Below, piece after piece: positions 1 through 21,400 of a DNA stretch of 64,000 nucleotides. The notes beneath the pieces were generated by a model. The model searched no databases. It saw only the letters and a program-made list of their open reading frames with translations, and was not told the DNA's origin. The position numbers and the translations under genes were made by a program. Position 1 is the first letter of the stretch. The number at the start of each line of letters is the position of its first letter. This stretch comes from Tubulanus polymorphus (taxonomy: Eukaryota; Animalia; Nemertea), in the NCBI RefSeq assembly GCF_964204645.1, contig NC_134032.1:1546416-1610415 (forward strand). Reading direction: 5' to 3'.

Positions 1-2357
1 CTCTGAGCGATCGTTTGATCAAGATGGCCGCCAGGCAGTTAAACGGGAGTTGCTAGAGCACTGTTTCATATCAAATAAACACGGCATCCATTGTTCGCAG
101 CAACAAGTATTATGAATATAGGGGACTGTGGCAATCGAGGATCCACCAGGGGCGCCAGTGTGAAGTCGAACTTTTGCGGGTAAAATACCCGAACGAGTAT
201 TATGGAAATTGCTGGATGCCGAAACTTCAAGTGTTTTAAATCCAACTCAAATTATACCGATATATGACCTACTTCCACGGCGCCACCTACCGGGATAACC
301 GATTACAGCCACTCGAAATGGATAGATTTACGAACTGGAAGTATAAATGAGATTTAGACTAGGTTTAAGAGAGCCACGCGTTGCTTATCGTTTCACCAGT
401 GAGACCAGTGTCACTAATTCAATCGACGAATATGGAGAAACGACGAAAACGTTAATTACAGAATTCGTTTGAATATAAAGAATAACTCTGTTTCGTGATC
501 TATTTTTTCTTCTCGGCGAAAAAATAGAATTTCAGATTTTACCACAAATCATTTTCCAACCGTTTCACCGAAAAATAGAATTCCTACACATAATAATTAA
601 TTCATCCTTTCTCCAGCTTCCTTTCTCTCCTCACGTTACACTTCACACCTACCGCACACACGCACGCGTGCACGCACAATTTGCGTGCACGTGCGTTGTA
701 TATTCGACACACGCAAATTTAAATCACCGTTAATAGTCCCGCACGCGGTTGGAAGTTCGCCGATAGAGTGCGCCCGCGGCTGGTCCTCAAACCCCCTACC
801 TCTCTCTTACTGTTACACCTCTTATGTTTGGAAGTCGATGAAAATCCATATCTTATTTTCTCCCATCTATTTGAACCAACCGGCGCATATTTCCGGGGAG
901 GATCCTAGCTGCCAGTGGCTGAGTGTACGCATATTATATCACTTTAACCAAAAATTCTGGTGTAAATTTAAAAAAAAAATTGTGTGGTGAGGTTTTCTTC
1001 TAAAACCCCGTGTGCGGTGCGCATCGTGCTGCGCGCGACCCCTGCTGGCGACTCTAGGAACTGGTTCCCGGTAGCGGAACTCAACCGCGGGTCAATCACG
1101 CGAACACCTAATATCTATATATATATATATATACTACTACTAATTTGCATATTGGAGGCATATTTTTAAATCGGGTTGTTTTCGTTTTTTCGTTTTTCTC
1201 TCTCTCGCTCGATTCTGCCACGTTGTTGCCTTGCGTTACGGTTCTTCTTGTGTTTATAGGTAAGTATCCAACCCGGCGACCCGCGCGACCTCTCTCGGGG
1301 TTGATGAGTATTACAATTATCATAAATTATCCGAGAAGGGCCGAAACACTCATCCTACCCTCCATCCCTCCCCCTCGCCGTTGTCATGTAACCCATATAT
1401 ACTTATATTATGACCAGCATCCTCCCATATGTTATACCCCCCTAAACTTTAGTTTCTATAGACCAACCTGGCATGCTTGTTCTAGTGTCACATTTGATAT
1501 CATATAACACACATATATATCTATATTAACATATATTCTAGTGATTTTGAATGATGATTTTGATTTGATATTTTAGAGTATTGTTGATTTACTAACCAAA
1601 TACTGTGAATTGAATTCGAGTTGCGAACAGCAACCAGTCAGATCGGTGCATAAATACACGGTTCCTACATCATCCCTATTTCAAGATCGAATTCAGTAAA
1701 GATTATGAATTCTTAGTTGATGTTGAGTTATTGTTTGTTCTGTTCTGACTGGTTGTTCATCTGTCGGTAGGAACAATATTTACTGCCAGACCTGTCCTAG
1801 TATTACAGTCACACTCTCTACTCGTTCCTGCCGGCGTTTAAAACGTCACTTAATTCTAAATTGGACCCTGAGCATTCACAACTGCAGAACTCTGCAAGGA
1901 GCATTGAAATTAGTGATAGATTTGAAAAATGATCTATGAAAATAGTTTCATGGCGTCTGTAGTTGATTTTAACGTTGTACGATTCCTCTGCCCACCAGCG
2001 CCATCTACGTATTGTTTCCTGAACTTGTCGTTGATCACGTGTGCGCCCTCTCCCGCATATTGTTGGCAGATTGCTCTGTAGTTGTGCTCGTTTGAGATCT
2101 CACTGGGGAGTCCATATTTTTAGATCTCACTGGGGAGACCATATTTGATAGCTGGATCGATTTGCACAGTTATGATTATTGAATTCAGTTCTCAACTCAG
2201 TTATATGGGTTTCGACTCTCCCGGATTCTTGCTTGGAACGACTCCGGATCCAGTTCCACCAATATGTGGACTTAATTTTATTCCTGATCCATTCCCACTG
2301 TTGTTTGGGTTTAAACTCGACCTTGGGTCCGATCCAGTATGCGTCGGTTTTGACTCC

Positions 2358-2745
2358 GAATCCAGTTCCACAGTTGTGTGGGTTTAATTTGACTCTGGAC
2401 CCAGTTCCACAGTTGTGTGGGTTTAATTCGACTCTGGATCCAGTTCCACAGTTCTGTGGGTTTAATTTGACTCTGGATTCAGTTCCACAGTTGTGTGGTT
2501 TTAATTTGACTCTGGACCCAGTTCCACAGTTGTGTGGGTTTAATTTGACTGTGGATCCAGTTCCACAGTTGTGTGGGTTTAATTTGACCCTGGATCCAGT
2601 TCCACAGTTGTGTGGGTTTAATTTGACTCTGGATCCAGTTCCACAGTTGTGTGGGTTTAATTTGACTCTGGATCCAGTTCCACAGTTGTGTGGGTTTAAT
2701 TTGACTGTGGATCCAGTTCCACAGTTGTGTGGGTTTAATTCGACC
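2358..2745. repeat. 39-bp minisatellite, ~10 copies
   Basis: unit ctggatccagttccacagttgtgtgggtttaatttgact. Confidence 0.95.
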
Positions 2746-2853
2746 GGACACTCTGTCACAGAAAAAAATATAAAGTGAAATAAATCCCGAATAAAAAAAT
2801 TCACGTCGCATTCATATGGTGTGTTTAAAATGTACAACTACTCTGCATTTCAG

Positions 2854-3221
2854 GTGCGTACCCGTGTTTACAAGTGGACTTTCACTTAAAACGTGATATC
2901 GGTTACTTCCTCATACAAGTGTACATACCGAGTATCCTGATAGTGATTCTATCGTGGGTGGCATTCTGGATTAATATCGAGGCGATACCAGCCCGCGTAT
3001 CGCTGGGACTGTTAACCGTGTTAACTATGACAACTCAGAGTACAGGAGCCCGGTCGTCTCTGCCTCGCGTATCCTATATCAAAGCTATCGACGTGTGGAT
3101 GTCGATGTGTTTGATATTCGTATTCGCTTCGTTGCTCGAATTCGCCGTCGTCAATGTCTTCTCCCGTAAAGAAATCAAAGTGAAGCGCATGCCGGATCCG
3201 GAAATGATACCGATGGGCGAG
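2854..3221 (+). CDS. Cys-loop ligand-gated chloride channel subunit (glycine receptor/GluCl-like), internal exon encoding end of loop C plus TM1-TM3; 5' exons lie outside the window
   Basis: tttcag|GT acceptor (phase 1), GAG|gtaagt donor (phase 0). Translation [80 protein letters not shown]; the PAR motif before TM2 indicates anion selectivity. Confidence 0.95.
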
Positions 3222-3653
3222 GTAAGTCGGGAAATGTTTATTATCGATTATTATCATTTTTTTTCTCGATTGTTCGTCGGATTTTTCACCGCTACTCACA
3301 CCCCACCTAGCGGCAGTTTGTTGCACGAGTATATTATAGACGCGTAGACGTTTTCTAATCAGAATATATGAGTAAAATCGACGAAGGCGCCGGTGGCGGG
3401 AAAACCTCGAACTAAGAAACAACAGGTCGCTTCAAATGTCAAATTAATCGATGACACATTTCAATAATTATCTCTAAATCAAATGATTCGAATTGGGGAA
3501 AGTTGGCCGATCTGAATTCAAACGGATTCCACGTCGATTTTGTTCAGATTTTGACGTCAATGCGAATGAAACTTATTCAAGCATTTGCAGCCTGTCTGAC
3601 AGACTAAAACATTGCATCGAAATAGAACCGGGTTGTATAAGCATGGATAGAAA

Positions 3654-4703
3654 CCAGACACTCCCTCGCTGTTCTCCGCTGTATCACGATACAGTGATAA
3701 GAACTCAGACACTCCCTCGCTGTTCTCCGCTGTATCACGATACAGTGATAAGAACTCAGACACTCCCTCGCTGTTCTCCGCTGTATCACGATACAGTGAT
3801 AAGGACTCAGACACTCCCTCGCTGTCCTCCGCTGTATCACGATACAGTGATAAGGACTCAGACACTCCCTCGCTGTTCTCCGCTGTATCACGATACAGTG
3901 ATAAGGACTCAGACACTCCCTCGCTGTTCTCCGCTGTATCACGATACAGTGATAAGGACTCAGACACTCCCTCGCTGTTCCCCGCTGTATCACGATACAG
4001 TGATAAGGACTCGGACACTCCCTCGCTGTTCTCCGCTGTATCACGATACAGTGATAAGGACTCAGACACTCCCTCGCTGTTCTCCGCTGTATCACGATAC
4101 AGTGATAAGGACTCAGACACTCCCTCGCTGTTCCCCGCTGTATCACGATACAGTGATAAGGACTCAGACACTCCCTCGCTGTTCCCCGCTGTATCACGAT
4201 ACAGTGATAAGGACTCGGACACTCCCTCGCTGTTCTCCGCTGTATCACGATACAGTGATAAGAACTCGGACACTCCCTCACTGTTCTCCGCTGTATCACG
4301 ATACAGTGATAAGGACTCAGACACTCCCTCGCTGTTCCCCGCTGTATCACGATACAGTGATAAGGACTCAGACACTCCCTCGCTGTTCTCCTCTGTATCA
4401 CGATACAGTGATAAGGACTCAGACACTCCCTCGCTGTTCTCCGCTGTATCACGATACAGTGATAAGAACTCAGACACTCCCTCGCTGTCCTCCGCTGTAT
4501 CACGATACAGTGATAAGGACTCAAGACACTCCCTCGCTGTTCTCCGCTGTATCACGATACAGTGATAAGGACTCAGACACTCCCTCGCTGTCCTCCGCTG
4601 TATCACGATACAGTGATAAGGACTCAAGACACTCCCTCGCTGTTCCCCGCTGTATCACGATACAGTGATAAGAACTCGGACACTCCCTCGCTGTCCTCCG
4701 CTG
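3654..4703. repeat. 54-bp minisatellite, ~19 copies
   Basis: unit cagacactccctcgctgttctccgctgtatcacgatacagtgataaggact; explains the ORFs at 3493, 3557 and 3604. Confidence 0.95.
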
Positions 4704-7379
4704 GTTCTATTAGTTTGCAAGACGACAGCGCTTAAAACGTTTGAACTAAATGCATGAATATTTTATCGTTAACTTTGTATGTTATGTAAAAATAATATAT
4801 ATAGGTCGCATCTGTCCTCCAAATAATCTGGGGTCAACCACGGGCCCGATATTGGGTTGCCGTGATGTTTGCGGCAGAGTATTATTATGTTGGATGTGTG
4901 TTAGATACTAATGTCTAGATTACTACTGGTAGTTGCCTCCATTGCTTCGCCGCGTTCAGACTCGTTTTCTAATTTTTTTTTAACGTAATTATAATTTTTC
5001 TGTTCTCTCCTCTATAAACATATCAGACCGACCTCGCTTTATAAAACCTATACCTCTCAATCTATCGAATACCTACTCGACTATTCACCCGCTGTTCAAA
5101 CTGTTTACTACCGAAAAAAATACACTAATTCTTATATCGATATCAACACAAAATATTGAATTCGTATTACCACCACGACGCGTGTGAAGCGTTCAATCTG
5201 AGCTTTTAGGTTATTTCTTTTCGAGGGCACTTCGATATAGATATTCAACAAAAACAGTGGCATTACCTGCACTTGAATATCATAGGATTCATTCCTGACC
5301 CTGCATGGATCTATATAGGTGGCGCTGCAGCTCATATTGTGTACGATGTGACGACGACGTCTTCAGGTGGTTCTCGGAACTATTGTTGTCGAATCTCCAC
5401 CCGCTTTTTAGTGTTATCGGTGTATTTTAGTTTACAACCGCTCTCTCCATAGATGTAGAATTTTCAAGTTCTTTCCGTAAAAACCGATCATCGTTTGAAA
5501 AAAAAACCGTCCAAAGAAAAAATAAACTTAATGTTTTCAAACGTTTTTTTCATAATGAAAAGATATTGTCAAAAATTCGCGTATGAAAGTGCAATAAGTT
5601 CTATTAAAACTCATAATAACAGTTAAAACAAAAAAAACAAAATAGATTTTGTCTGAAATTATAGCTGACAGGTTGTTTTTGAACGTCCAGTGTTTAAATA
5701 CCGCCGTCAACGACTGAATCTTAAACCGTGGTATTAAAACACTGTCACCGGCACTTGTGACGTATGAGATGCAAGCCCTAGTGACGGTACGAAGAACTAA
5801 CGTAAAAAAAGAACACCCGAACATGACCGACAGAAGGTCGGCGTTGTAAAACATTCAACATTAGGACCTACCTGCTTCTGGGAGGTACCTACACCGGTTT
5901 TAGATTGAGTGGAAGGAACAGCTGGTTTAGAGTGTTTTACAATCATTAAAAAAAGACGCCGATTTTGCAAAAACGCGAACATCTTTTTCTAGGGAGGACG
6001 ATTAATGGAGTCTCGACCGTTGTTTGGTAGCCGAAGAGGAAGTCCTATATTCGCACCTGAGGTTAGCATCCGTTTACATATATGTATTCATGTATATAAA
6101 CATATATACATATATTCATAAATATATTATGATTATTCATTATTATTATTATTATTATTGTTAATATGATTATTAGTATTATTATTATTCTTTCCTGGTC
6201 TTATTATCTCTAATTGTATCCCATTCAGTGTAAGAAAAAAAAAAACATTTATACATTTTGATATTACAATAATTTTGTTGTCCTAGAATTGTTCCTTCCA
6301 TGCTTTGAAAAAAAAAAACGGAAAGTGACGCGACTTAGAAAACAAAACCACGTCAAATAGTCGTTTATCATTCATCTAGATTATTATGTAGTCATAGTTC
6401 ATTTTCATTATTTTAATCTTTATTTCATTCAAATCCTTCAGAATCACTCGATCAATAATCTCTATATCGTGATCTCGAAAGAGGTTTCTTTACGAATTGT
6501 ATCATCACGTTTCCGAAATTGCGACGCGTAAAATATTGTCTGAAAATCAGTCGTTTTTTCCTGTGACTAATAATTGTAGATAGTTTGGCAACCACGGAAC
6601 CGCCATTCAGGAGACCAGGTAGTCCGATACACCACTACATAACGCGTTATAGGCTTCATGCGGCGAATTTATTTTTTTCTAATATAAGAAAAATTATATG
6701 GTGTTTGGTTTGGCTTGGCTGGTTAGCTTTTCTGAATTGATTGTACTTTTTGAACATAACGGGCATCTTGTTACTATAGCGGTTTGCATTTAAACTCAAC
6801 CTTCAAAACATAAATAGCGAATAACTAAAATTTATGAAATTCGGTTCACTTTTCATCGTATCCAATATACAAATTTCGTCGATCGGCGAATGTCCATTAT
6901 TCTCTACAGCCTGTTCTGAAATTTAATGTGGTATTTTTGGTTATGAATGCATCAATTCCTGGCTCTGTCCGTCTATCTATGGTGATGGTTAATTCATGAC
7001 TCTCGAATCCTGCCCGACCGGATATTACGTTTTACCGCATTATTCTTAATTGTTTTGGTTCGGGATTCTTTTTTTTTGTATTCAATGTTGATCGTCGTGT
7101 ATTCATTAAATTACATTACCAAAAATGGTGTTGTGTACGCCATCTATCGTCGTGATTATTTTGCATGCCAGAGGCGGTGTCGGCCAAATGTTTGTTGCAA
7201 AATCAAAACGATCGTATATCAACGTACTACATTCATACTTCGTGTCAAAACTATTTCCAAAATATGAAGGTCTTTAACGGGTGGAATATCTGAAGATTTA
7301 CCTGCCCCTCCTCAAGCCGATTGGTTTCTGGTTCACACACAAAACCTTTTCCAATCGTTGATTAAGTCGTATGGTTCGA

Positions 7380-7643
<264 letters not shown>

Positions 7644-8620
7644 GTCAATATTATTATCATCATCATACATATAGTTATGACAATTATCATTAATTATCTG
7701 ATTATCATTATTATGATTATTGTTATTATTATCACTATGATTATCAGAATTATTACACAGCATACTAACTGACTCTGCCGCACATTAACACCAGAGTGAG
7801 CCTCAGCACTAGTTCTTGACCGAATCTCGGTGCTTAACATAGATAGAACACCCGGTTTAACGTCTCAAAGCACGACTCAGTTCCGCAGAGTTCGGTAAAG
7901 TTAGTCGAATTAATGATTGTTTTAACCGTTGAGTGGAATTCTACCCGTGAATCGTCGGTCGCCGGTCGTGAATTGATCGGTCGCCGTGGCTTATGCCGGA
8001 TTCTCACCGCAGTTGCAGCCATTTTGATTTTATGAAAAAGTGCATGAATTACACATTTATAAGTGGGTGATTAAGTAATTGCTTTAATTAACCATACGCT
8101 TATCTGGCGAGCGGTTTTGTAGTGGTGCAATATATTTCAAGGCCAAATTAATGCTTTTTAGTTCCCGGTTGTTCGCCTGATCATGACGTCATCACCTGGC
8201 CTAATTTTAACTGTAGACTAGTGCGCGCTTATAGTGTGTTCTGTATCTAGGGTTAATTCGCATTAATTTCCACAAGGTGCGTTATCAATCTGATAGAAAC
8301 TCTGATTCAACATTCAGCGCCTGACAAACTCCAGCCGCTTTCACACGTCCACTATTTCGGCCCGTGTCGAGCTTGTCAAATTTGTCCCGTGTCGGATAAG
8401 AGGTAAAGATTTACATGTTTTGGCAAATAGGGCAACCGGAAATAGTCTCCACAATAATGACGTAGTGATAACGATAAGTTCTTTCGGCCAGATTATGACT
8501 TCCGGTAGATGTCGTTAACGTGTGTTCTCGAATTCTTAGCCGAAAGGAAAAACCAGCAAAAAAAAAACGCCGAAATATTTTCCCGGCCCAAACCTCTCGA
8601 TCTTCTTGTTTGTTTTGCAG

Positions 8621-8791
8621 GTGAACGTGATTGTGGAGAATGGACGGCAACCGCGAGCCACCAAGTCAATGATACCCGACCCGAAAGGAAAAGAAAAAGC
8701 GCGGCGCATCGATAAAATATCGCGGAAACTTTTCCCGCTGTCGTTTCTCATATTCAACGTAGTTTACTGGGTGGTTTACCTTATTACATAA
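8621..8791 (+). CDS. Cys-loop channel terminal exon A (loop end + TM4 + stop)
   Basis: ttttgcag| phase-0 acceptor; VNVIVENG...ARRIDKISRKLFPLSFLIFNVVYWVVYLIT*. Confidence 0.92.
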   Translation: MNVIVENGRQPRATKSMIPDPKGKEKARRIDKISRKLFPLSFLIFNVVYWVVYLIT

Positions 8792-11730
8792 ACAGTCGTT
8801 ACGTGGCGCCATCTAGCCTCGACTGGACGAAACGTTATAAAGATCGTCTGTCATATTCCGTACTGCGCCATAACCATTGAAACTGTTCATATAGTCGTCG
8901 ATAGAGGGCGTTGTGTGTCTGTAGCTTAGCAGATGACGCGGTCATGGAGAATCTGATTGGTCCGAATTCGTTTCGGCCAATCGATCCCTAAATATGGCCA
9001 CGAGGTTATTCAAAATGGCGGCTCAGTAACCGCTACGATAAATAATGTATTTTTGATGCGATATATTTTCTTGATGACGTCATGTGCGGTGTTTCCCGCG
9101 GTATCATCTGCTAGGCTATATGAACAACAGACAAATTATCCGCAACTGACCAGTGGCGACCTCTGTCGACAGCGCGTGTAGATTCATACAGTGCATATAT
9201 AGCTTAATGGAAGGCTAATGATTGTCGTTAAGAAAATATTGTGAATATTTAAAAAAAAACCCAAGGTAGTATAATATCATAAAACAATGTAACTTATACA
9301 ATGTATTTGTATATACAATATATAATATGTAGATAATAGTCTGCAGTTTTATAGACGGTTGATGAACTAGAACCGAACTTGGATAAATCGCTTTGAAATC
9401 TTGAAATCCAATCGTAAATTGGCGTTTGAACTTTGACCTTATTCGGCACATGCCGTCTATCTGGTAATACAAGAATTCGTGTTTAAATAATAATGAGGTA
9501 GGCCTACCGGCTACGCGACTGAGCCAACCGAGGATTCCACTTATGGCAAGTGAGGATCCGACAGGTGTCGCTTGCGATAACTCGGTCTTCCGGTTTGATT
9601 AATTTGTATTTCAGTTAAATCGAATTATTTTTTCCGATCAATGAAACGATTATTGACGAAAACTAATCATCCTTATTTTGACTACGGCAGACCGAGTGCT
9701 CGTCGTGCCATCTGGCGGGGGAATGGGGAATCATGGGTCGACTTCATCGAACTCGTCTTTGCCTAGGATCTCACGTTAAGAGACCTGTCTCTAAAACTGG
9801 TCTACAACTTTGTATTAGTTCCGAACCCATATAAACGCGTGTGATCGCGGTATGATCGATATTGCTTATGCCGGATATGCGTCGAAAAGATATCTGACAT
9901 ATGCCACAACCTTATAAAAAGTAAATGGGATGAAAATATGCAATACCCTTGCCAAAAAACGATGAATTAATGATTTGAGTAGATAGCTTCTAGAAGTCGC
10001 TTCTTTGAGGCGTTGGAAATGTTTTTTAAATTTTTCCCCGTTCAAATATAGCCTAACGTGTCTTCCTAACTAAAAACCTACACAATAAAATGACTGAAAG
10101 TGACCAGGAATTAATAATCGCGTGACGAAGCCATACATGTCACGTGATCAGCAGCCGCGCCGCTTTGATGTCAAACATCCGCCATATGTAAATAAATATT
10201 AGAAAATAGGCTTTGATTGTTTCATCGTGTTTATGCATACAAATCTAGGGAGGTCGTACTATCCAACGGGATTCGAACCTGATATGTGTGAGTATTGATC
10301 ATCCCTCACACCGGGACTCGAGCCGATCGAGTCTGAAATGTTATATCGGGTTCGAATCCCGAGCGCGCTGCGAAAATCCCGACCGCAACCAACGGTCCGG
10401 ATACGAGAACGTCTATCATTGAGAAACTATTCCCAGTTAGGAATGAAGAATAGCTTTGGCTCGTTCTTTGTTCCGTATTGAAATTGATAGGAATTAAGAG
10501 AATAATTTTTCGGTTCAGTTTTTTTTTTTTCAAAATCATGTTATCACTATCGTTAGTTATTGATATTAATTAAAACTGCTGACACTAATTAAAAACCGAG
10601 TCTTCGTTAGTGGTTTATGAAATATATTTTATGTATGTGTTAGTCATAATTTCTGAGAATAAATATAAAGTAACCCATTCATTGTTAAGCCGAAAAATCG
10701 GCTGGACGACATAATTATGCAAATCATTTAGATCTAGGTGGCAGCACCGTGTTCCCACAACGCATGCGGTAAAAAATCGTCCGAAAAAAAATCGATTCAT
10801 TTCTGCATCATAAAAGTTAATCAACTTTTTTTTTCTTTTTAGAAATTCTGAACAATCGTGTATACAATGGTTTTAAGGTTTTTAATTGTAATTTGAGGTC
10901 ATGGAATTATCTTCATTTTTTTAGTTAGGCTACGGTATTTTCATGAAATATGAAAAGGTTTTTTTCTCAAAATTACGTTCTTAAACTTCGTCGCTGTAAG
11001 CGATAAAATTGCAGCGAAAAATAGGACCGTGTTTCGTGATAACAACATCGATATTTCTTAGGGTTCACGTATATGAAGCTAGGGTTAAGATTAGGGTCGA
11101 CCCTAAGCTGTCCTGCTAAGCGGGCACCTGTTAATTTTTAATTCTTATGATAACCGATGTGTTAACGATGATACTCGTATTTTTGTTTTTGATCGTGTGC
11201 TCTCTCTCTCTGTCTCTACTTTCCTCGAAGCCTCGCCTGCCGCAGCCGAGTTCAATCTATAATAAGTTCGTGTAAACGGGTGTTGTGTATAAATATAACC
11301 GAGGTCGTTATGACTCTTAAACGAAGCGCTTCCTCTTTAATCATTGCAGCTGCTTTTTGCTAAACTATTTAAGACAATTCGATGTTGATAACTGAGCCTT
11401 ATGCGCGCGGTGTTCCTCGCGGGGATTTTACTGGTGACATCGTAGATTATAAAGGCTGTAAAGTCATTATCGATAAACTGCCGAGTATCCTCGTGATACA
11501 GCATATTTGAGAAAAAAACTTCAGTTGTAGGGACTCGAACCTGATACCATTAGATACGGTGACTTTGAGGGGTCTGAACTAGTATAAACCGCGGTACGTT
11601 ATCGATATAGTCGGGTTCGAATCCCTGCGATTGTGGATGGAAATTAGATTACCTTATTGTAACGAGAGAAATCCCACGATAAATTCCGCCAAAAACGTAA
11701 AGTCTCTATATTAGAATGATTATATTTCGA

Positions 11731-11773
11731 GCAACGTTTTCGAGCTAAATACTATTTAGCCATCATCAGGCGT
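11731..11773 (-). ncRNA. Isolated degenerate hammerhead-like motif (PLE relic)
   Basis: Minus strand CTGATGA-TG-GCTAAAT(agt)ATTTAGC-TC-GAAAACGTT; stem I weak. Confidence 0.45.
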
Positions 11774-14700
11774 ACTGAGTACTGAGATTGAATACATGTA
11801 GCTTTCCAAGGTTCCATGTATCTCAAGAAGGAATATCGATGTACTTGTAAAGATTTAGGAACTGAAACTGAGCTATTCGAACCCGATATCCGCAACTATT
11901 CCCGTTCGAAGAATGCGATAAGATTAAGTCCCAGCAGTTGTTAATGACTCGCACTAATTGCGACAGACGGCGCTGATAAATCTAATTTTGTTAGTAATGC
12001 GCGAAAAACAAAACAAATATACATATCAACTGATATATAGTTACGTGTTGAATTAATGTGTCCTTTGTAAAATATAACTTTGTTAATCGTGACTCATGGG
12101 CTCCAGAAGCGTAGGGCCCAGTTCTACAGTTTATATATATACCGCATAGCATAAAGTCATGAGTACAATATCTGTTTGCGTGTACCAGTGTTACCAGACC
12201 TCGAGTAATACAGTTAACTCTGCTTCCGTTTAAAGTCGAGAAAAACAGATTCTAAAACTGCACAATATGAAATATGATACGATAGCTGTTCGAGTAACAC
12301 GTTTTCTCTTGCATAGAGACCACAGCCGATGATAAGTGCGAGGTTATTAAACGATGTCGATATAAATCGCCCCGCTTCCTGATTTTTGTAAAGTATGACA
12401 CTTGTGTAGAAAAAAAACCGGTTTATAATGAAATAAAGATCATGTTACACCATGTTTATCGTAAAGCCGTATCTTCTTGTTTATCTATGCTTTTTGATTC
12501 CAGTTTCACACTGATCCACGAGGAATCGGACCGAACTTCGTGTTAAAACCAGTTTAGGCACGGTAACACTTGCATGGCCCGATTCCAGAGTCAGTGTTTA
12601 AGCTCCTGCTGGCTGAGGTTGGACTGACATAAATTCGATCAATTCTTTCATATAGGCAGTGCATATTTGTTGACTCAATATAAGTCCAGAAGCCGGATTG
12701 ATTCAGGAAGGAGATCATCTTAAGTCTTGATTCTGGAACGAAGCTTTCGGCGCTATTTTACAAGCGATTCAAATAAATCTTCATAATCAATTGGTAACAA
12801 AACTTGTAAAATACTTAATCCGATGCTCGCCCAACACGGGAGGATGGGGTGGGGGTTGGTGGCGAGCCGGGTCTGACGTGCTATAGTCAGGTGCACTACT
12901 CAGAGATAGTAAGCATTAGAATGAGGCCATATTTCAGACCAGCTCTTGTTATCGAGGAGGTCAATGAAGTGGAACAATTCTATCTTAATTACTAAACTAA
13001 AATTACACATTTTTAAGAACTATTCCGAAGTCCATCAATGTACATCGTTCTAAACCTTTCTTCACATCTTCAGTTTATTCATCTAGTTTTATCTTTTGTA
13101 TCTTCAGTATTCTTGGGGAGGACCTCCACCTTCTCTTACCCGCTCTCTTCTCTCTCTTCTCTCTCTTCTCTCTCTTCTCTATCTCTTCTCTTGGATTCTT
13201 CTGTTGTTTGTTTAACTCTATCTACAAGGAGCGTTTTGTACAATGACAATTCCATATGTCATTATATCCTATACCATAACCTGATCTTCCGGGAAAGATT
13301 TCTCTATTTCTTTATTCTCTCTTTCTCTCACTCTCTTCCTCAATCTGATTCAGTTCATTCCGATAACGTAGTCTGCAGCGGAGTTTCCTCACGTGTCGCA
13401 TTAACCCCCTGTTTTTCATTTGCATGAGTATCTCTAATCGACGAAAAGTAGCGCGGAACATTTTCCACGAAATTCTCGGCGCGGTTTTCACGATACACGC
13501 AGAACTTCGCCGTTTCGTCGTCCGTTAGTTTCAATGTTATCTACGACTAACCCTTGTTTGTCTCTTATCACTGACACTTTTTCCTGGACACTGTTAATTA
13601 ATAACACTCGATATTGTAGATATTATTGTACTAATCACAATTATTAGGTGTTCGCTCGTTGTTCGTTATTCATAGAAGGCACCACTTGTCGTTCCGTATT
13701 GCTTTTGGTTCGATTTTCGTGGCTGTATTTTAAACATGAAAGATTACTCGCAGTCAAATCGTGATAATGAATTAATATTTAGTAGATAATATTTCGATAA
13801 TAGTCTCACCGAGTTCACTCTACCGTTCGGTTTGCCAGGGTGGCATTTTCAGTTTTTACTTACGTTAGAAACGACTGTGCTATCGTCTGATTTCCGTGGT
13901 TTAACAGCCGTTTCTGAATATGTCCGATATAAACCACGGTTTCTCAATCAATTTCACGCATTATGACTTATTTGCATGATTTCTGAATTCATAGATATAT
14001 TCAAAACACTGTGTATTTCGATTTCTGAAGGTTTCGCCGGATGCCAGATTTTCCAGGTGTAGATGTCAGATCTATCCGGGCCCGGTTTCACGAACGGGGA
14101 TTAACCATTAATTCGAATTAAGGGATAATTCGAATGAAAAATGTTTAAATCGAATTAGTTAATTCGAAGATTAAATCTGTTTCACAAACGCGAATTAGCG
14201 AAAAATTCACTAATTATCTCGATTTGTCGAGATGCAGAACAAAAAGCTGTTAATATATAAATCTGAAGCCTATCAAAAATGTTTCGCATACTCAGCATAG
14301 GTGAAATTGACCAGAGTTGAAATGAACTGGGACAACAGTTTGTTATGGGGAGAGAAACCGAAATTAAGGTCACCACTGACGGAGGAATTGAAGTGTGAAT
14401 TCTATGTCCACGCAGTGTAATAAATACAATCTCGCAATTTGACTTAATCCTAAATTGTAACATTAGGTTACTTTAGCCGATGATTACACGAGACAATATT
14501 CTAATCAAAGGGCGATTTATATTTATGATAATTCGATCTTTCAAAACAGTTGAATTTGAAAAAATTCGGATGATTTTTAGAAGATTACACAAACAGTTAT
14601 CCATGTATATTCAGGCGTAATACCGATAGTCTAACCGATATTATATATATAAAACACTAGGTTACCCCTGTACAAATTTCGACTAGATCTTTTAGGTTAT

Positions 14701-15226
14701 TTTGATGGCATGATATAATGACTTGTTTAATTGTTATCTTTTCTATCATAAATCCACGGATTCATCGCATCCAAATCGCAACATATCAATATCCAACTTA
14801 TATCTGATATTTTCGTCTAATTAGCCGTTTATAGATAAAGATATTGATTACAGAAGGAACGGTTTTATTATCGAGTTGTTCTGTTGAACTGACCGAATGA
14901 AAAAGCCGCCATCTTGATTTCGATTAATTAAACGGCACAACGTTGTTCAAAATATATTTTCAGTTAGCAATTGCGACAATTATATCATAGTTAAACATCT
15001 TATCGATAGTTTCAATCGGAATGATAATTCCTCGTAAAGACGGGTTGATTTACGGAGAATAAGGGCCTGAAGTTTTTCCCCGAGAGACGGCTTTTGGCGA
15101 CATCCAGCCTGTGAACCATAACTCCAGTGTGGAGTATTGGTAGAGTCTCCCGAACGTTGGTCAATGGATGGCCACTTTGGTGTGTATGGCAAGTTCTATG
15201 GCACTCCATATAAACTATCTCACCAT

Positions 15227-15303
15227 GACACCCCGATAGCTTAAGTGATTGAGCAGTCTTCCGGCAAGCGAGAGATCCGTGGTTCGAGTCCCATTCTCGG
15301 TCG
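15227..15303 (+). mobile_element. tRNA-like SINE head (not a canonical tRNA)
   Basis: A-box-like tagcttaagtgattgagc and B-box ggttcgagtccc; acceptor and anticodon stems imperfect. Confidence 0.5.
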
Positions 15304-15838
15304 TACGTCGCCAATTCTCCCGCTGCCCGAGCACGCACCAGTTGGGTGTCTCTGGCCTTGGAGACCTCTATATCTTACCTGTCTTTTCCTATATGGTCCC
15401 TGGACCAAAATACGACGATTCGCTTCTTTTCTTTCTGATTTCTTCGAAACCTGATAGTCTGGATCTGTAATCCGATTAGTAGAAGGAATGCCAAGCATCA
15501 AAATACCACTAATTATTATCATACCCGAATATATCAATAACCTTCCGCAATTGGAAATATACAGTGTTTTGAATAGATTTTAGATAAAGCGTGGTTTCAA
15601 TTGGAAATTCACTGATTCAAGGATTAAACTATCGTTTCTAAATAAGTTCAAACAGTACGTTGCGTTATCCGATCACCACAAACTAACAATCAGTGATTTT
15701 GTAAATGAAGGTTGGCTCCGGATGCTACTGCTGCAGTCGAGGGATTCTCTCCCGCTGATTGTCGTTGTTGTTTCTAACCCAGATGACGTCACACACTCAC
15801 ACGCCCCGTGCCGTTTTTTCCCGTTCTTCTCGTTCCAG

Positions 15839-16006
15839 ATGATCGTTGAAAACGGCGACGACGGTTTCCCGCGCTTAAAACGGCCGAAACATCACGACCC
15901 GATTCGAAATGTCGCCAGAAAAATAGACAAAATATCGAGACGTTTGTTTCCGCTTTCGTTCGTCATATTTAACGTTGTTTATTGGGTCGTTTATTCCGTG
16001 TATTAG
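15839..16006 (+). CDS. Cys-loop channel terminal exon B (loop end + TM4 + stop)
   Basis: cttctcgttccag| phase-0 acceptor; MIVENGDD...ARKIDKISRRLFPLSFVIFNVVYWVVYSVY*. Confidence 0.9.
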   Translation: MIVENGDDGFPRLKRPKHHDPIRNVARKIDKISRRLFPLSFVIFNVVYWVVYSVY

Positions 16007-18239
16007 ACACTTTTATCTTACTGCCGAATTTCTATTTGGCTTGTATTGATGCGCCACCGTGCGGCCGATTCGGAACCCGATTGGAGATAGTGTTCAACCG
16101 GAAGTGATATCAGAAATTTGGTGAAGTGCCACCTGGTGACAATTTTTGTCGCTCATGGCAGATCGTTGATTAATCGATTATTCCTTTGTATCTATCATTG
16201 TCCATTCATTCTTATATTCAAATTCGTATCGTATCTAAGTGAATAGTGACCGCGAGAAGCGCTCCTAGTGGATCCCCGACTGCCACAGTACCCTTGTCGT
16301 TATTCCTGCTGTATATACACAGCTATTTAATGTAAATTAGTTGACTTTGTAGCTGGTTTTTTGAATATTTGGCCCCAGTGATAAGTAGTATCACTAATCG
16401 ATACAACTCAATTCAATGGGTTTACTGCCTCAGATTTCCGTGATAGCAATAATTTATACAATATGAATTAGAGGCGGTTGAATGGTGTAGTTTACAATTC
16501 AACCATTTTCTCCAGTTTCCAGTAGACATTTTAGTTGTAAATCGATTTGAATAATTTCTGGTATCGAATAAAACCCGTTTATTGAAAAACATAATTCCGA
16601 TCGTTGAGAATTTATTTTTGGTTCTTGGTTCCATTTATTGTTTGGCCTGAGTAAGCTGCATCTCTGGACCAAAAGGGACAGTTTGCAATTAACTCCAAAG
16701 CGAGATTATTCCGCAAAATGGCCCAATCAAACCTCTGGTGAAATCGGCTCAACTGAGATATAGGGAACAATTGGTTTCTAGGGCGATGCACACGAATATA
16801 TTACTACGCATTAGTTAGTCACAGTTTTACAGTTCTACAGTTTTAATGAGTAGTTTGAGTTCGAATCCCGCATTTCATTCACCGTAGATTTAAAGCCATC
16901 AAACAACAGTTTAACTAAACAACGCATTTAATTTTATTTCTGTTCACCGTTCATTCAATTTCTGTGTTTATGACCCAAACATAGTAACCCTCTCACCCCC
17001 CGATCCCTCCGCTCACTCCTATCACAGTAGTTTAACAGGCGCTATTTTCCGTTGCAGTAATTTAAATGTTTAACAGATAGTTATTAACTTATTAGATCAT
17101 TAACAACTCATTGAAACTTTATCATCAACCTTAATATCGTGTGTATAGCTAGACACTTAACCCCAACCCTCTAACAAAAACAAATTACACTCTTTGATAG
17201 TTTCTATGGGTCCCGGTAGGTGGCTTACGTCGTCTGGGTCCCTGGGATTGTATCCAGGTATGCATGAGCGGCAAAAATGGCTGCCTCCATCGAATCCCCC
17301 TATGATGTCATCCAAATGCTACCAACGTCCCTGCAATAGTATTTCTACGTGTTATCATCGGCAATTATGACGTCATTGGGTGAACGATGGAGGTCGGGTT
17401 GCCATGAATTATGCGGAGTATTCGCCGTTCTGTTAACAGAAACATAACGATAATTTATTCAAGCGTGAATTAGTATCTTTGCACATTATATTATTCATAT
17501 ATTTGCATAATTTTAAGCTTATATTCACAACATATATATTATACATATATGCATAACCATCCTTAACCTTTTTCGCCTTTTGTCTTGAAGAGCATTTAAT
17601 ATGATAATCCACTGTAATAATCAATATATATTTATATACAATCACATTATCCTTATCATCATTGTTATAATAATCATTGATAACTACTATTAATCGTTAA
17701 TTAATTATCGGTTGATATTCGCACGGCGTTTTTTCGTTTTTCTGGTCGCCAGTTTCTTTTTGTCATTTTGCGCATTGTTCCAGCTAAATGCTTGCCGCGG
17801 TAAGTTTGCATTTTGTTCATATCCTATCATTTTTCATGATTATATAATTTCTATCAATCTATATATAATCTACGTGGATTATCAGCTTCCGTCGAGTCAA
17901 CGGCTTTGATGGAGTCGTGAAATAGTGCAGCTTTTGTAGAAAGTAGTGTCTAAGAGTTTGGTTGCCTAGAGCCTAGAGCGGCATGATGTCAACGGCTTTG
18001 GTAGCCTAGAACGGCATAATGTCAAAGACAGCGACATGTGGTCGAGTAGATTAGCAAAGTGTTAAAGAATTTGGCTGAGTAGAATGTCAAAGCCTTTCGT
18101 AGAAAATGATGAAATATTAGATGACAAACCTTTTAATCCACGTAAAAATCAAACTCTTGTGCTGAATACGTCTGAAAGATGTTTCCGAATTTAAAAGATA
18201 ACCGACGCAGTTCTGATTGGGTTTTCAATTGTATTTCAG

Positions 18240-18413
18240 TTGAATATGATACTCGAAAACGGAGACGATTTGGCGAAAAAACGCGAACCGAAAACGAACG
18301 AATACGGCCGAATGTTAGCGCGGCGAATCGATAAATATTGCAGACGAATTTTCCCGATCGTCTTTTTAAACTTCAACATCGTCTGGTGGGTCACATACAC
18401 AGTCGTCTATTAG
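18240..18413 (+). CDS. Cys-loop channel terminal exon C (loop end + TM4 + stop), absent from ORF track
   Basis: gtatttcag| phase-0 acceptor; hand translation LNMILENGDDLAKKREPKTNEYGRMLARRIDKYCRRIFPIVFLNFNIVWWVTYTVVY*; AATAAA at 18763-18768. Confidence 0.88.
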   Translation: MNMILENGDDLAKKREPKTNEYGRMLARRIDKYCRRIFPIVFLNFNIVWWVTYTVVY

Positions 18414-21400
18414 ACACATCACGTGACCCTGCACGCTGTCTGGTGGGTCACATGCACAGTCGTCTATTAGACACAGCACGCGACCCTGCACGCCGCTGTC
18501 TGGTGTACCACGTGACCTGCGCAACGACGAGAACCGACCGAACCATGTATGGAGTGCGGCACATACGTAGTAGTTTATAGACCGACGGCTGAGAGACAAC
18601 TGCGGCTGGATCACGTGAGATAAACTGCGCCATCTGGCTATGGACGCGTGACTTAATCGTGTTGGTAGGTCATGTGACACACTACACCGCCTGCCGGGTC
18701 CAATGCCACACTGCGCCATCTGGCGGGTAGCTCTACACCTCACTGCGTCATGTAATGCCTGCAATAAACTATTGTAACAGTCTTAAGACAACAGTGAAAT
18801 ACATACAATTTTTAAATCTGCTTCATTGCATTTCACCGATTTTTCCTTAGATACACCGAATTTCTATAGCATGTATAAGATATAACACTAATATTAACCA
18901 TAATCCATTTTTTTTTTCATCAATTAAATGTCGCCCACATACAAGCGATGTGGTGGTACGTTGTGTGCATTTCATATGAGAAATATAATTGTGGGCACTT
19001 GAATTGATTTTGACTCTAAATTCAACTTTGCGATGATTATTATATTGATTTGTGTCTCGAATGTAGATTAGTTTTTCGGTCAAGCGAATTTATACCTATA
19101 GTTAGAGCCCTATTCGAATGATTAATCGTAACTTCATTCATTTTAGCTACCAGTACGATCCAGTACGATCCATATGAGTTTATGATAAAAATCTCGATGA
19201 GTTTGTAATGTTGTAAACTGTGTCGTGGTGTGTTAAATATCGAAATACTAAACAAGAAATCATAATCAGATAGCGCCACCGGAAGTGACGTATACTTCCG
19301 GACGTGTTGGTGTGTGTAACAATTGAATAAAATCCTTTCAAATATTGATATAGAATGACAACGATCTTCATTGTTCTTCTTTGGTGTAAGGATGCTACCT
19401 TTCAGAATTAAGATGATCGCTTAGAATTGGAATCATCTCTTGACTTACTTCGTAAAAGGCCACCATCTTAATCCTTGAAGTGTTCTACGCCGGTACTCGC
19501 TGTTCCATTCTGGGCCCGCCACCTGCCGGCCAGTAGCGGTGAACAATTGCGACCAGTATTATAATACGCAGCGAGTAGGCCTACTCGGGCTATACTGGGG
19601 CTATTCCGGACCCAGTTTAAAGCTAAGATCGACTTCACCCCAGTCATCACGTCGCAGCGGTCTGCGATTTTTTCATCGGGAACATTTTCGAGTTTACTTA
19701 CGACCGCTTAGCAGTGTTACGGGTAACAGTTAATTAATTCTCCAGCCACAAAATAATGATTAGTTGGTTACGACAGCCTTCTCGTTATCAATGAACTCAA
19801 CAATTGGAATATTGAATGAAATTAGCTTTGTGAAATCCGGCTCTGAAAACTATTTGATTTTGATTAAGATAAATCTATCTATACTTTCTAACCTGAGAAC
19901 CGTGAGTTTTGGGTCCTAAAATAAACGTACATTCAAGATTTACGTAAAATATTTTCTATTTATTCATCAAAATCAAGGAACCATTAACAATATTTATGGA
20001 TAAGATAAAAATAGGCAGTAACAGCATGAACATAGTCAGTCGAGCATTACTTCACCCGAGATAGTAAGATCTTAGTTCTGATTGGTTGGTGAGCCACGAT
20101 ACGACAGTGAATTGGTCCAATCGAAGCGAATCTTACATACAGGGTTTGATATAACTTATTCTAATCAACTAATTAACATCGAATCGATACTTTTTCAACA
20201 GATTTTTGAACAGACTACAATTACCCGTATATCATCAACCGCGTGGATCAATAGTACGTACAAAACATGTCGCTGTAGCGAAATTGAAAAACAAACCGTG
20301 AACTCGCTCGGAAGATGGCAGTTCTACATCTTTATTGGATTCGAACCCGATTCGATCGCACCGAAGCCATGCAACGACACCTATCGGCCGCGTGGCTTAT
20401 CAAATACTTCCGAAATGGCTAACTTTCATTATCACTCTCATCATTCACGATTTATCATCATACACATAGTAAATATAGCACTTATGTTACGTCTTTACGG
20501 TTACTTAAAATAACTATATTTCAATACACATTTCCTATTTTTATCTACTTTTATGGAGTAAAATATAACAGATGTTTTGTATCACTAGGAATATACTCTC
20601 TCCCCCCTTCGCGCATCCCCCTCTCCCTCCCTCTCTCCCCTCTCCCTCCCTCTCTCGTTCGATGCTAATATAAACCTCTTATATAGAAATCTAGAGACGA
20701 CAAAATGTCATTTTACTCGACTATTCATTATAACAAATATTACCCATTATTACAAATTCTATTCATATAAGTTGATTCTAGTAACGAGTATATTTTCATT
20801 ACCGCAGTTGCACATAATAATTGTTCGGGTAATGTCAGTATGTACAGAAATACCAGTGCAGCCCTGGGCCCAGTTTCAAAAGCCATGACTTCAGTCCAAA
20901 AATGTGCTAAAAGCAACTTATGACGTGATCACCGTAAACACGTGACTGTCTATAATTCAAGTGAGCAAAACCGATAATCATTAAGAAAAACTAAACAGTT
21001 TCGACTCAGTTCTAGAATAAGCCATTTTCAAACCCTTAGTTCAAGGCGTGTGTAAGAAAAAAGCGAATATAGAATTAAGTCGAAAAGTCACTAGCCTCTT
21101 TATAGTTTACCCGTACAACTGAGGGATTTTTCATCTTCAAAGTATAGCTATATTCTCAAAGCGGTGGATATTAAGACGAAGGCCCGGTCTTAGACGTCAT
21201 GGCAACTGCGGAACTGGACCTGCCCGGGCAATACCATATCACAGTTACAACGGGAGTGCACCGCGGTTAGAATTCTAAGAAAATATCTCGCAAAATATCG
21301 TTAAGGTTATAATAAGGTACGAACATTTTATTTACAGCCGATAATTTACTGTAACAATGATATATTACACGCGTTTGTTATCGGATCCTTATTGAACAAC

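Follow-up and report, generated by a model that had tools for sequence, protein, structure and literature searches.

Does a single channel gene of the ribbon worm Tubulanus polymorphus build several receptor subunits by choosing among three different last exons? The question arises at a locus in a 64-kb stretch of its genome (C8:1546416-1610415, hereafter the window); all coordinates given without a contig name count from window position 1. First-pass annotation had described a Cys-loop chloride channel whose single exon for transmembrane helices M1 to M3 (the TM1-3 exon) is followed by three tandem terminal exons, A, B, and C, each encoding the fourth helix, M4 (TM4 exons), and had proposed that these are interchangeable and yield three isoforms. 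We confirmed that the structure is one gene with three paralogous terminal exons, not three genes. Alternative use of these last exons, with the donor at 3221 joined to A, B, or C, is the explanation that we regard as probable; use is proven for exon C and probable for at least one more. The gene itself, judging from its sequence, most likely encodes an anion-selective, glycine-receptor-alpha-like subunit of a pentameric ligand-gated channel.

The TM1-3 exon (2854-3221, forward strand, frame from 2856) encodes the pre-M1 segment, the helices M1 to M3, and the beginning of the M3-M4 loop. Its translation carries the anion-selectivity PAR motif (AIPARVSLG) before M2, and the exon ends in phase 0 at the donor GAG/GTAAGT, directly after 3221. 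In a genome-wide profile scan, PF02932 matches this exon with 119.3 bits at C8:1549334-1549612 (window 2919-3197), and its best matches in the PDB are the glycine receptor (GlyR) alpha-2, alpha-3, and alpha-1 subunits (E 4e-48).

The three terminal exons lie further along the same strand, and each encodes the final part of the M3-M4 loop and M4 and carries a stop of its own: exon A at 8621-8791 (56 codons plus TAA; acceptor ttttgcag/G), exon B at 15839-16006 (55 codons plus TAG; acceptor gttccag/A), and exon C at 18240-18413 (57 codons plus TAG; acceptor atttcag/T). All three acceptors are canonical, pyrimidine-rich AG sites in phase 0. The exons have in common an xVENG start and an A-R-x-I-D-K...F-P...F-N...W motif with 15 invariant positions in M4, and each of them alone matches the M4 of glycine receptors (in searches of solved structures, E 5e-8 for exon A against GlyR alpha-2 and 3e-5 for exon C); positions 182-233 of PF02932 match exon A. 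Amino-acid identity over the full exon length is 60-62% for A-B, 50% for B-C, and 42-44% for A-C, with pairwise tblastn E values of 1e-12 to 1e-15. Exon C is the most diverged copy, and exon A the one that most resembles TM4 exons from other species (62% identical to P0161). The copies differ in the basic segment before M4 (KGKEKARRIDKISRK in A, IRNVARKIDKISRR in B, YGRMLARRIDKYCRR in C), in M4 itself (FPLSFLIFNVVYWVVY in A versus FPIVFLNFNIVWWVTY in C), and in their C-terminal residues. The nucleotides that the first-pass annotation had pointed out as common to B and C across their stops, TATTAGACAC, are indeed present, though six of the ten bases belong to the Tyr and stop codons. Translations and tblastn also bore out its description of one TM1-3 exon with a phase-0 donor and three intact terminal copies with their own acceptors and stops.

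A search of the whole window by tblastn with the four exon peptides returned one TM1-3 exon and three TM4 exons, with nothing further below E 0.1. The annotation had found no N-terminal or TM1-3 exons between the terminal copies, and this held in our searches as well: neither genome scans with PF02931 and PF02932 nor tblastn with Macrostomum and other full-length relatives (range C8:1526416-1566415) detected any ligand-binding or TM1-3 exon between 3221 and 18413. In the genome-wide PF02932 table, only at this locus do several M4 matches come after one TM1-3 match; a paralogue at about 368 kb on C8, with a TM1-3 exon 80% identical to this one, has a single TM4 exon. An independent contig of 3206 nt from sequencing run X2, which we take to be DNA because its cover is even throughout, spans 15182-18410 with allelic differences from the reference, so that B and C are adjacent in another assembly. 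In the X2 DNA, the first base of exon B differs from the reference (A>G at 15839), which changes Met to Val and gives VIVENG as in exon A; there is also a synonymous T>G at 15991, and none of the differences listed falls within exon C.

Among the checks that the annotation had named for its proposal are the splice junctions present in RNA and the balance of synonymous and nonsynonymous change among the exons. For the first, contigs of sequencing runs (Logan) were placed on window positions 13400-19399, the stretch holding B and C. It was chosen because Logan contigs break at graph branches, and the stretch from the donor to exon A would miss contigs of B or C isoforms. Two runs bear on expression: X3 is an RNA run, and X1, a 2014 run with 19 Mb of contigs that contain 95% of the words of the TM1-3 exon, is probably a transcriptome. 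In one X3 contig (record 18), the first 28 letters are loose and reproduce 3192-3219, and the alignment begins at 18238. Since the TM1-3 exon ends in AG and so does the acceptor, this is the junction 3221>18240, with 30 nt from the 3' end of the TM1-3 exon directly before exon C, and exon C is therefore part of this gene. Another X3 contig (record 19) covers 18595-19355 and continues into loose AAAAAAAA, a poly(A) tail. The 3' untranslated region (3'UTR) of the C isoform thus extends over 18414-19355 on the forward strand, with AATAAA at 19326-19331 and poly(A) addition 24 nt after it.

The same RNA run suggests that exon B may be used. One contig (X3 record 14) covers 15840-16161, with one unaligned end letter at 15839, the A>G site in X2, and X3 has no cover in 15568-15839, the roughly 270 nt 5' of exon B; this extent, together with the empty stretch upstream, indicates that the contig starts at the first base of exon B. 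A candidate AATAAA lies 561 nt past the stop of exon B. In addition, the contig carrying the C junction starts exactly k-1 = 30 nt ahead of that junction. A start at this distance points to a branch in the assembly graph, and hence to another continuation after 3221, which could be exon A, exon B, or the unspliced intron.

The second check concerns the age of the copies and the selection acting on them. Nei-Gojobori counts on a codon alignment of A, B, and C gave proportions of synonymous (pS) and nonsynonymous (pN) differences as follows: for A-B, pS 0.84 and pN 0.31 overall but 0.19 in the M4 core; for A-C, pS 0.71 and pN 0.42 overall but 0.33 in the core; and for B-C, pS 0.81 and pN 0.34 overall but 0.28 in the core. 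With synonymous sites saturated and a nucleotide identity among copies of 52-57%, the duplications must be old, and recent gene conversion is excluded. Had the copies drifted neutrally for so long, pN should be near pS and stops or frameshifts would probably have appeared. There are none in A, B, or C, all three of which are open, and the sequences accordingly indicate that all three copies are under long-term purifying selection.

Comparison with other species extends this picture. The closest TM1-3 exons in public contigs have 83-86% amino-acid identity, and we compared them together with their flanks. In two of these contigs, L015 (ERZ26222911) and L016 (ERZ25072384), one TM1-3 exon ending LDQ/GT is followed 3.6-6.4 kb further on by two TM4 exons, which lie 420-565 nt apart and have acceptors ttgcag/ATAAAT or ttgcag/ATTAAT and a stop each. 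Between the two contigs the first TM4 exons are 76% and the second 72% identical in nucleotides, a one-to-one orthology, and the spacer and upstream intron are 62% and 61% alike against 64% for shuffled sequence. With exons conserved one to one and introns at the level of shuffled sequence, the pair must predate the split between L015 and L016, and both of its exons have been conserved. A third contig, L020 (ERZ26696836), has one extracellular-domain set with a pair of TM1-3 exons and a pair of TM4 exons after it, in that order. Among the relatives as a group, tandem copies comprise two Cys-loop exons, two to three loop-C exons, two TM4 exons, and, in L020 only, two TM1-3 exons, always with a single N-terminal set (duplicated exons at L010:668-920 and 4133-4852; L015:6503-6772; L016:4327-4640 and 6669-8658; L020:10028-13498 and 16063-16693). 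The duplicated Cys-loop, loop-C, and TM4 exons indicate that tandem exon duplication is a habit of this gene lineage. A tree built from the TM4 exons places A, B, and C together, weakly (93/85), apart from the L015 and L016 pairs; the alignment has 63 columns and the tree no well-supported fork, and we do not claim an independent origin of the Tubulanus exons and the L015/L016 pairs.

The layout is that of alternative last exons, with one common upstream donor and an acceptor and stop of its own in A, B, and C. Under this mechanism, donor 3221 would be spliced to the acceptor of A or B and the RNA cleaved past that exon; otherwise transcription would run on and the donor would pair with the acceptor of C, so that the C isoform would require read-through of the ends of A and B. 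What each last exon contributes would run from the final part of the M3-M4 loop, with its divergent basic segment, through M4 and a short C-terminus to the stop, followed by a 3'UTR and a poly(A) site specific to that exon. All isoforms would have the same ligand site and pore, and their differences would be confined to the loop end, M4, and the C-terminal residues. Splicing to A and B would probably occur in other tissues or at other stages. Among the helices of Cys-loop receptors, M4 lies outermost and faces the lipid; in the glycine and GABA-A receptor families it has an influence on gating, on folding and assembly, and on how lipids, steroids, and alcohols act, and the basic stretch before it affects conductance and trafficking. 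For this reason differences between the isoforms may be expected in gating, in sensitivity to lipids or modulators, in assembly, or in trafficking. The gene can probably produce channels with one pore and different lipid-facing helices. As to how the choice is made, docking/selector pairing was examined between 3222-3654 and the 400 nt before each acceptor; duplex energies of -136, -120, and -137 against -137, -128, and -135 for dinucleotide shuffles give no support for pairing in this whole-length duplex test, which is crude and does not exclude it either.

Several observations weigh against a gene that uses all three exons. The only junction seen among the RNA contigs, placed on a stretch that begins downstream of exon A, is 3221>18240. 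The exon B contig has no overhang from the TM1-3 exon, 3221>15839 is not among the X3 contigs placed, and the depth of the exon B contig, 9.8, is like the 2.5-12.4 of intronic contigs and far below the 73-87 of C in X3. X1 contigs lie at 18381-19178, and within 13400-19399 this run covers the 3'UTR of C only. The nearest AATAAA after exon A is 1293 nt past the stop. In one relative (L010/L013/L014), the TM1-3 exon is followed after 10.5 kb by a single TM4 exon, and the next 16 kb hold no other. Selection was estimated from only about 55 codons, though the contrast between pS (0.71-0.84) and M4-core pN (0.19-0.33) is large. Apart from these points, a protein search for RNA-derived ORFs (open reading frames) of this species crossing the junctions, made with the TM4-exon profile, the TM1-3 exon, and the Macrostomum C-terminus, returned none, only exon-sized ORFs from other organisms.

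These RNA data would suit a gene in which only C is functional and A and B are unused leftovers of duplication in the last intron: the sole junction is that of C, exon B stands at intronic background, and X1 covers C alone. We nevertheless consider this unlikely. Synonymous sites between the copies are saturated, yet in both A and B the frame is open, the acceptor strong, and the M4 motif complete (A-B core pN 0.19); any copy left neutral since the duplication should have decayed; of the three, exon A is the closest to TM4 exons found elsewhere; and arrangements with two TM4 exons are conserved in other species. Dominance of C in both RNA data sets, X3 and X1, could also mean that A and B are spliced at noise level without a distinct role and that C is the sole physiological form. 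To this we give only a small probability, since it leaves unexplained why the amino-acid sequences of A and B have been conserved over the long term, and the two data sets are two samples of unspecified tissue and stage. That B or C comes from a separate hidden paralogous gene, or that the triplet is an assembly artefact, is scarcely credible, with nothing found in its favor, no extracellular-domain or TM1-3 exons between the copies, C joined to the TM1-3 exon in RNA, and an independent DNA contig with allelic differences spanning B and C. Alternative last exons remain our preferred explanation. Of the original proposal of three interchangeable isoforms, the gene structure, the C junction, and the selection on all copies stand; exon B is suggested by a contig boundary, and the full set of three is likely.

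The remainder of the gene lies immediately 5' of the window, where PF02931 and PF02932 scans and tblastn with full-length relatives located a single series of extracellular-domain exons (C8:1541503-1544348). In window coordinates these include exons at -4912 to -4850 and -3821 to -3588, a Cys-loop exon at -3200 to -3096 that reads CQMRLQKYPLDTQIC (C-x13-C), and two tandem loop-C exons at -2401 to -2267 (L007:7599-7733) and -2198 to -2067 (L007:7802-7933). A Neur_chan_LBD domain with its Cys-loop is therefore present (PF02931 at C8:1542588-1542842, 62.6 bits, and C8:1543125-1543319), and GlyR alpha-1, alpha-2, and alpha-3 are the best matches of the largest extracellular-domain exon (E 6e-20). 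The loop-C cysteine pair, DCSQNYTTG plus AYPC, spans an exon junction. The label GlyR-like comes from overall similarity and this cysteine pair, and the ligand may be of the GluCl type. The two loop-C exons are probably mutually exclusive. They lie 68 nt apart and have near-identical acceptors (ttttgtag).

Within the window, the introns are rich in repeats. The intron before exon A (3222-8620, forward strand) has no channel exon; it holds, after the TM1-3 exon, a 51-bp tandem array of 20.5 copies (3655-4703) and a (TA)130 microsatellite (7383-7643), and the intron preceding the TM1-3 exon holds a 39-bp array of 10 copies (2349-2744). ORFs of 130-391 amino acids at 2127-4668 and 7298-7772 were considered as genes within introns and rejected as artefacts of the 39-bp, 51-bp, and TA arrays on both strands, and their Pfam matches as spurious and of low complexity. 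At the end of exon C there is a 57-bp tandem duplication (18381-18493, forward strand) of two copies, 94% alike, the first of which consists of the last 33 coding bases of exon C, the stop, and 21 bases of 3'UTR. An X1 RNA contig has an 18-nt loose end at 18381, which suggests that copy number or sequence of this duplication varies between individuals. One further run, X4, is a Hi-C-like DNA library, as judged from contigs that stop at GATC sites with foreign tails. Its contigs stop after GATC at 16162-16165 and 18357-18360 with the same foreign letters, ATGGACGAACC..., at both, which seems to reflect ligation or adapters in a Hi-C-type library, not biology.

If the choice of last exon is real, the ligand site and pore are held constant while the M4 module alone is exchanged, a natural experiment on the role of M4, and one gene diversifies its channel properties via the choice of 3' end. 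The TM4 tandem exons in several species, beside duplicated Cys-loop, loop-C, and TM1-3 exons, suggest a conserved exon-level diversification in this gene lineage. Going further, we tentatively entertain the idea that the gene acts as a combinatorial cassette standing in for a subunit family, with two loop-C and three TM4 exons giving six isoforms, in ribbon worms and other invertebrates. It is equally speculative that alternative Cys-loop and TM1-3 exons would add to this in relatives, and that, independently of the pore, the exchange of TM4 and loop end would determine how sensitive the channel is to lipids or modulators, how it assembles, or its synaptic targeting.

The closest known counterparts by sequence are the vertebrate receptors GLRA1-3: whether the query is the extracellular-domain exon, the TM1-3 exon, or any of the TM4 exons, they come out as the best match. 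They also have the PAR motif and, as here, 13 residues separate the two cysteines of the Cys-loop, and the cysteine pair of loop C stands 10 residues apart. Among splice variants of these receptors, alpha-2 exons 3A/3B affect the extracellular domain, and alpha-1ins and alpha-3 K/L the M3-M4 loop; we know of no GlyR splice variant that swaps M4. A full-text literature search found no published swapped TM4 exon. The GluCl variants of Anopheles were considered as a precedent and rejected, as they concern exon 3 and loop length.

In insects, tandem exons occur in GluCl (exons 3a/b/c and 9), in RDL (exons 3 and 6), and in the nicotinic acetylcholine receptor alpha-6 subunit (exons 3 and 8) (PMC13512814, PMC6393475, PMC4019635). 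As in Tubulanus, isoform diversity in these genes stems from tandem exon duplication inside one subunit gene. The insect exons, however, are internal (extracellular domain, M2 region, loop), and none of them exchanges M4, whereas in Tubulanus it is the last exon, carrying M4, the stop, and the 3'UTR, that has been duplicated, so that the choice would be tied to 3'-end formation. That feature recalls two genes of Caenorhabditis elegans. In unc-49 and avr-14, one ligand-binding domain is spliced to alternative channel domains with alternative 3' ends, and the arrangement of a common N-terminal part with alternative C-terminal membrane parts is the same. In the nematode genes the whole M1-M4 block is exchanged and the pore changes with it, whereas the Tubulanus gene keeps M1-M3 unchanged and varies the loop end and M4. 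The relative with two TM1-3 and two TM4 exons (L020) is nearer to the nematode pattern.

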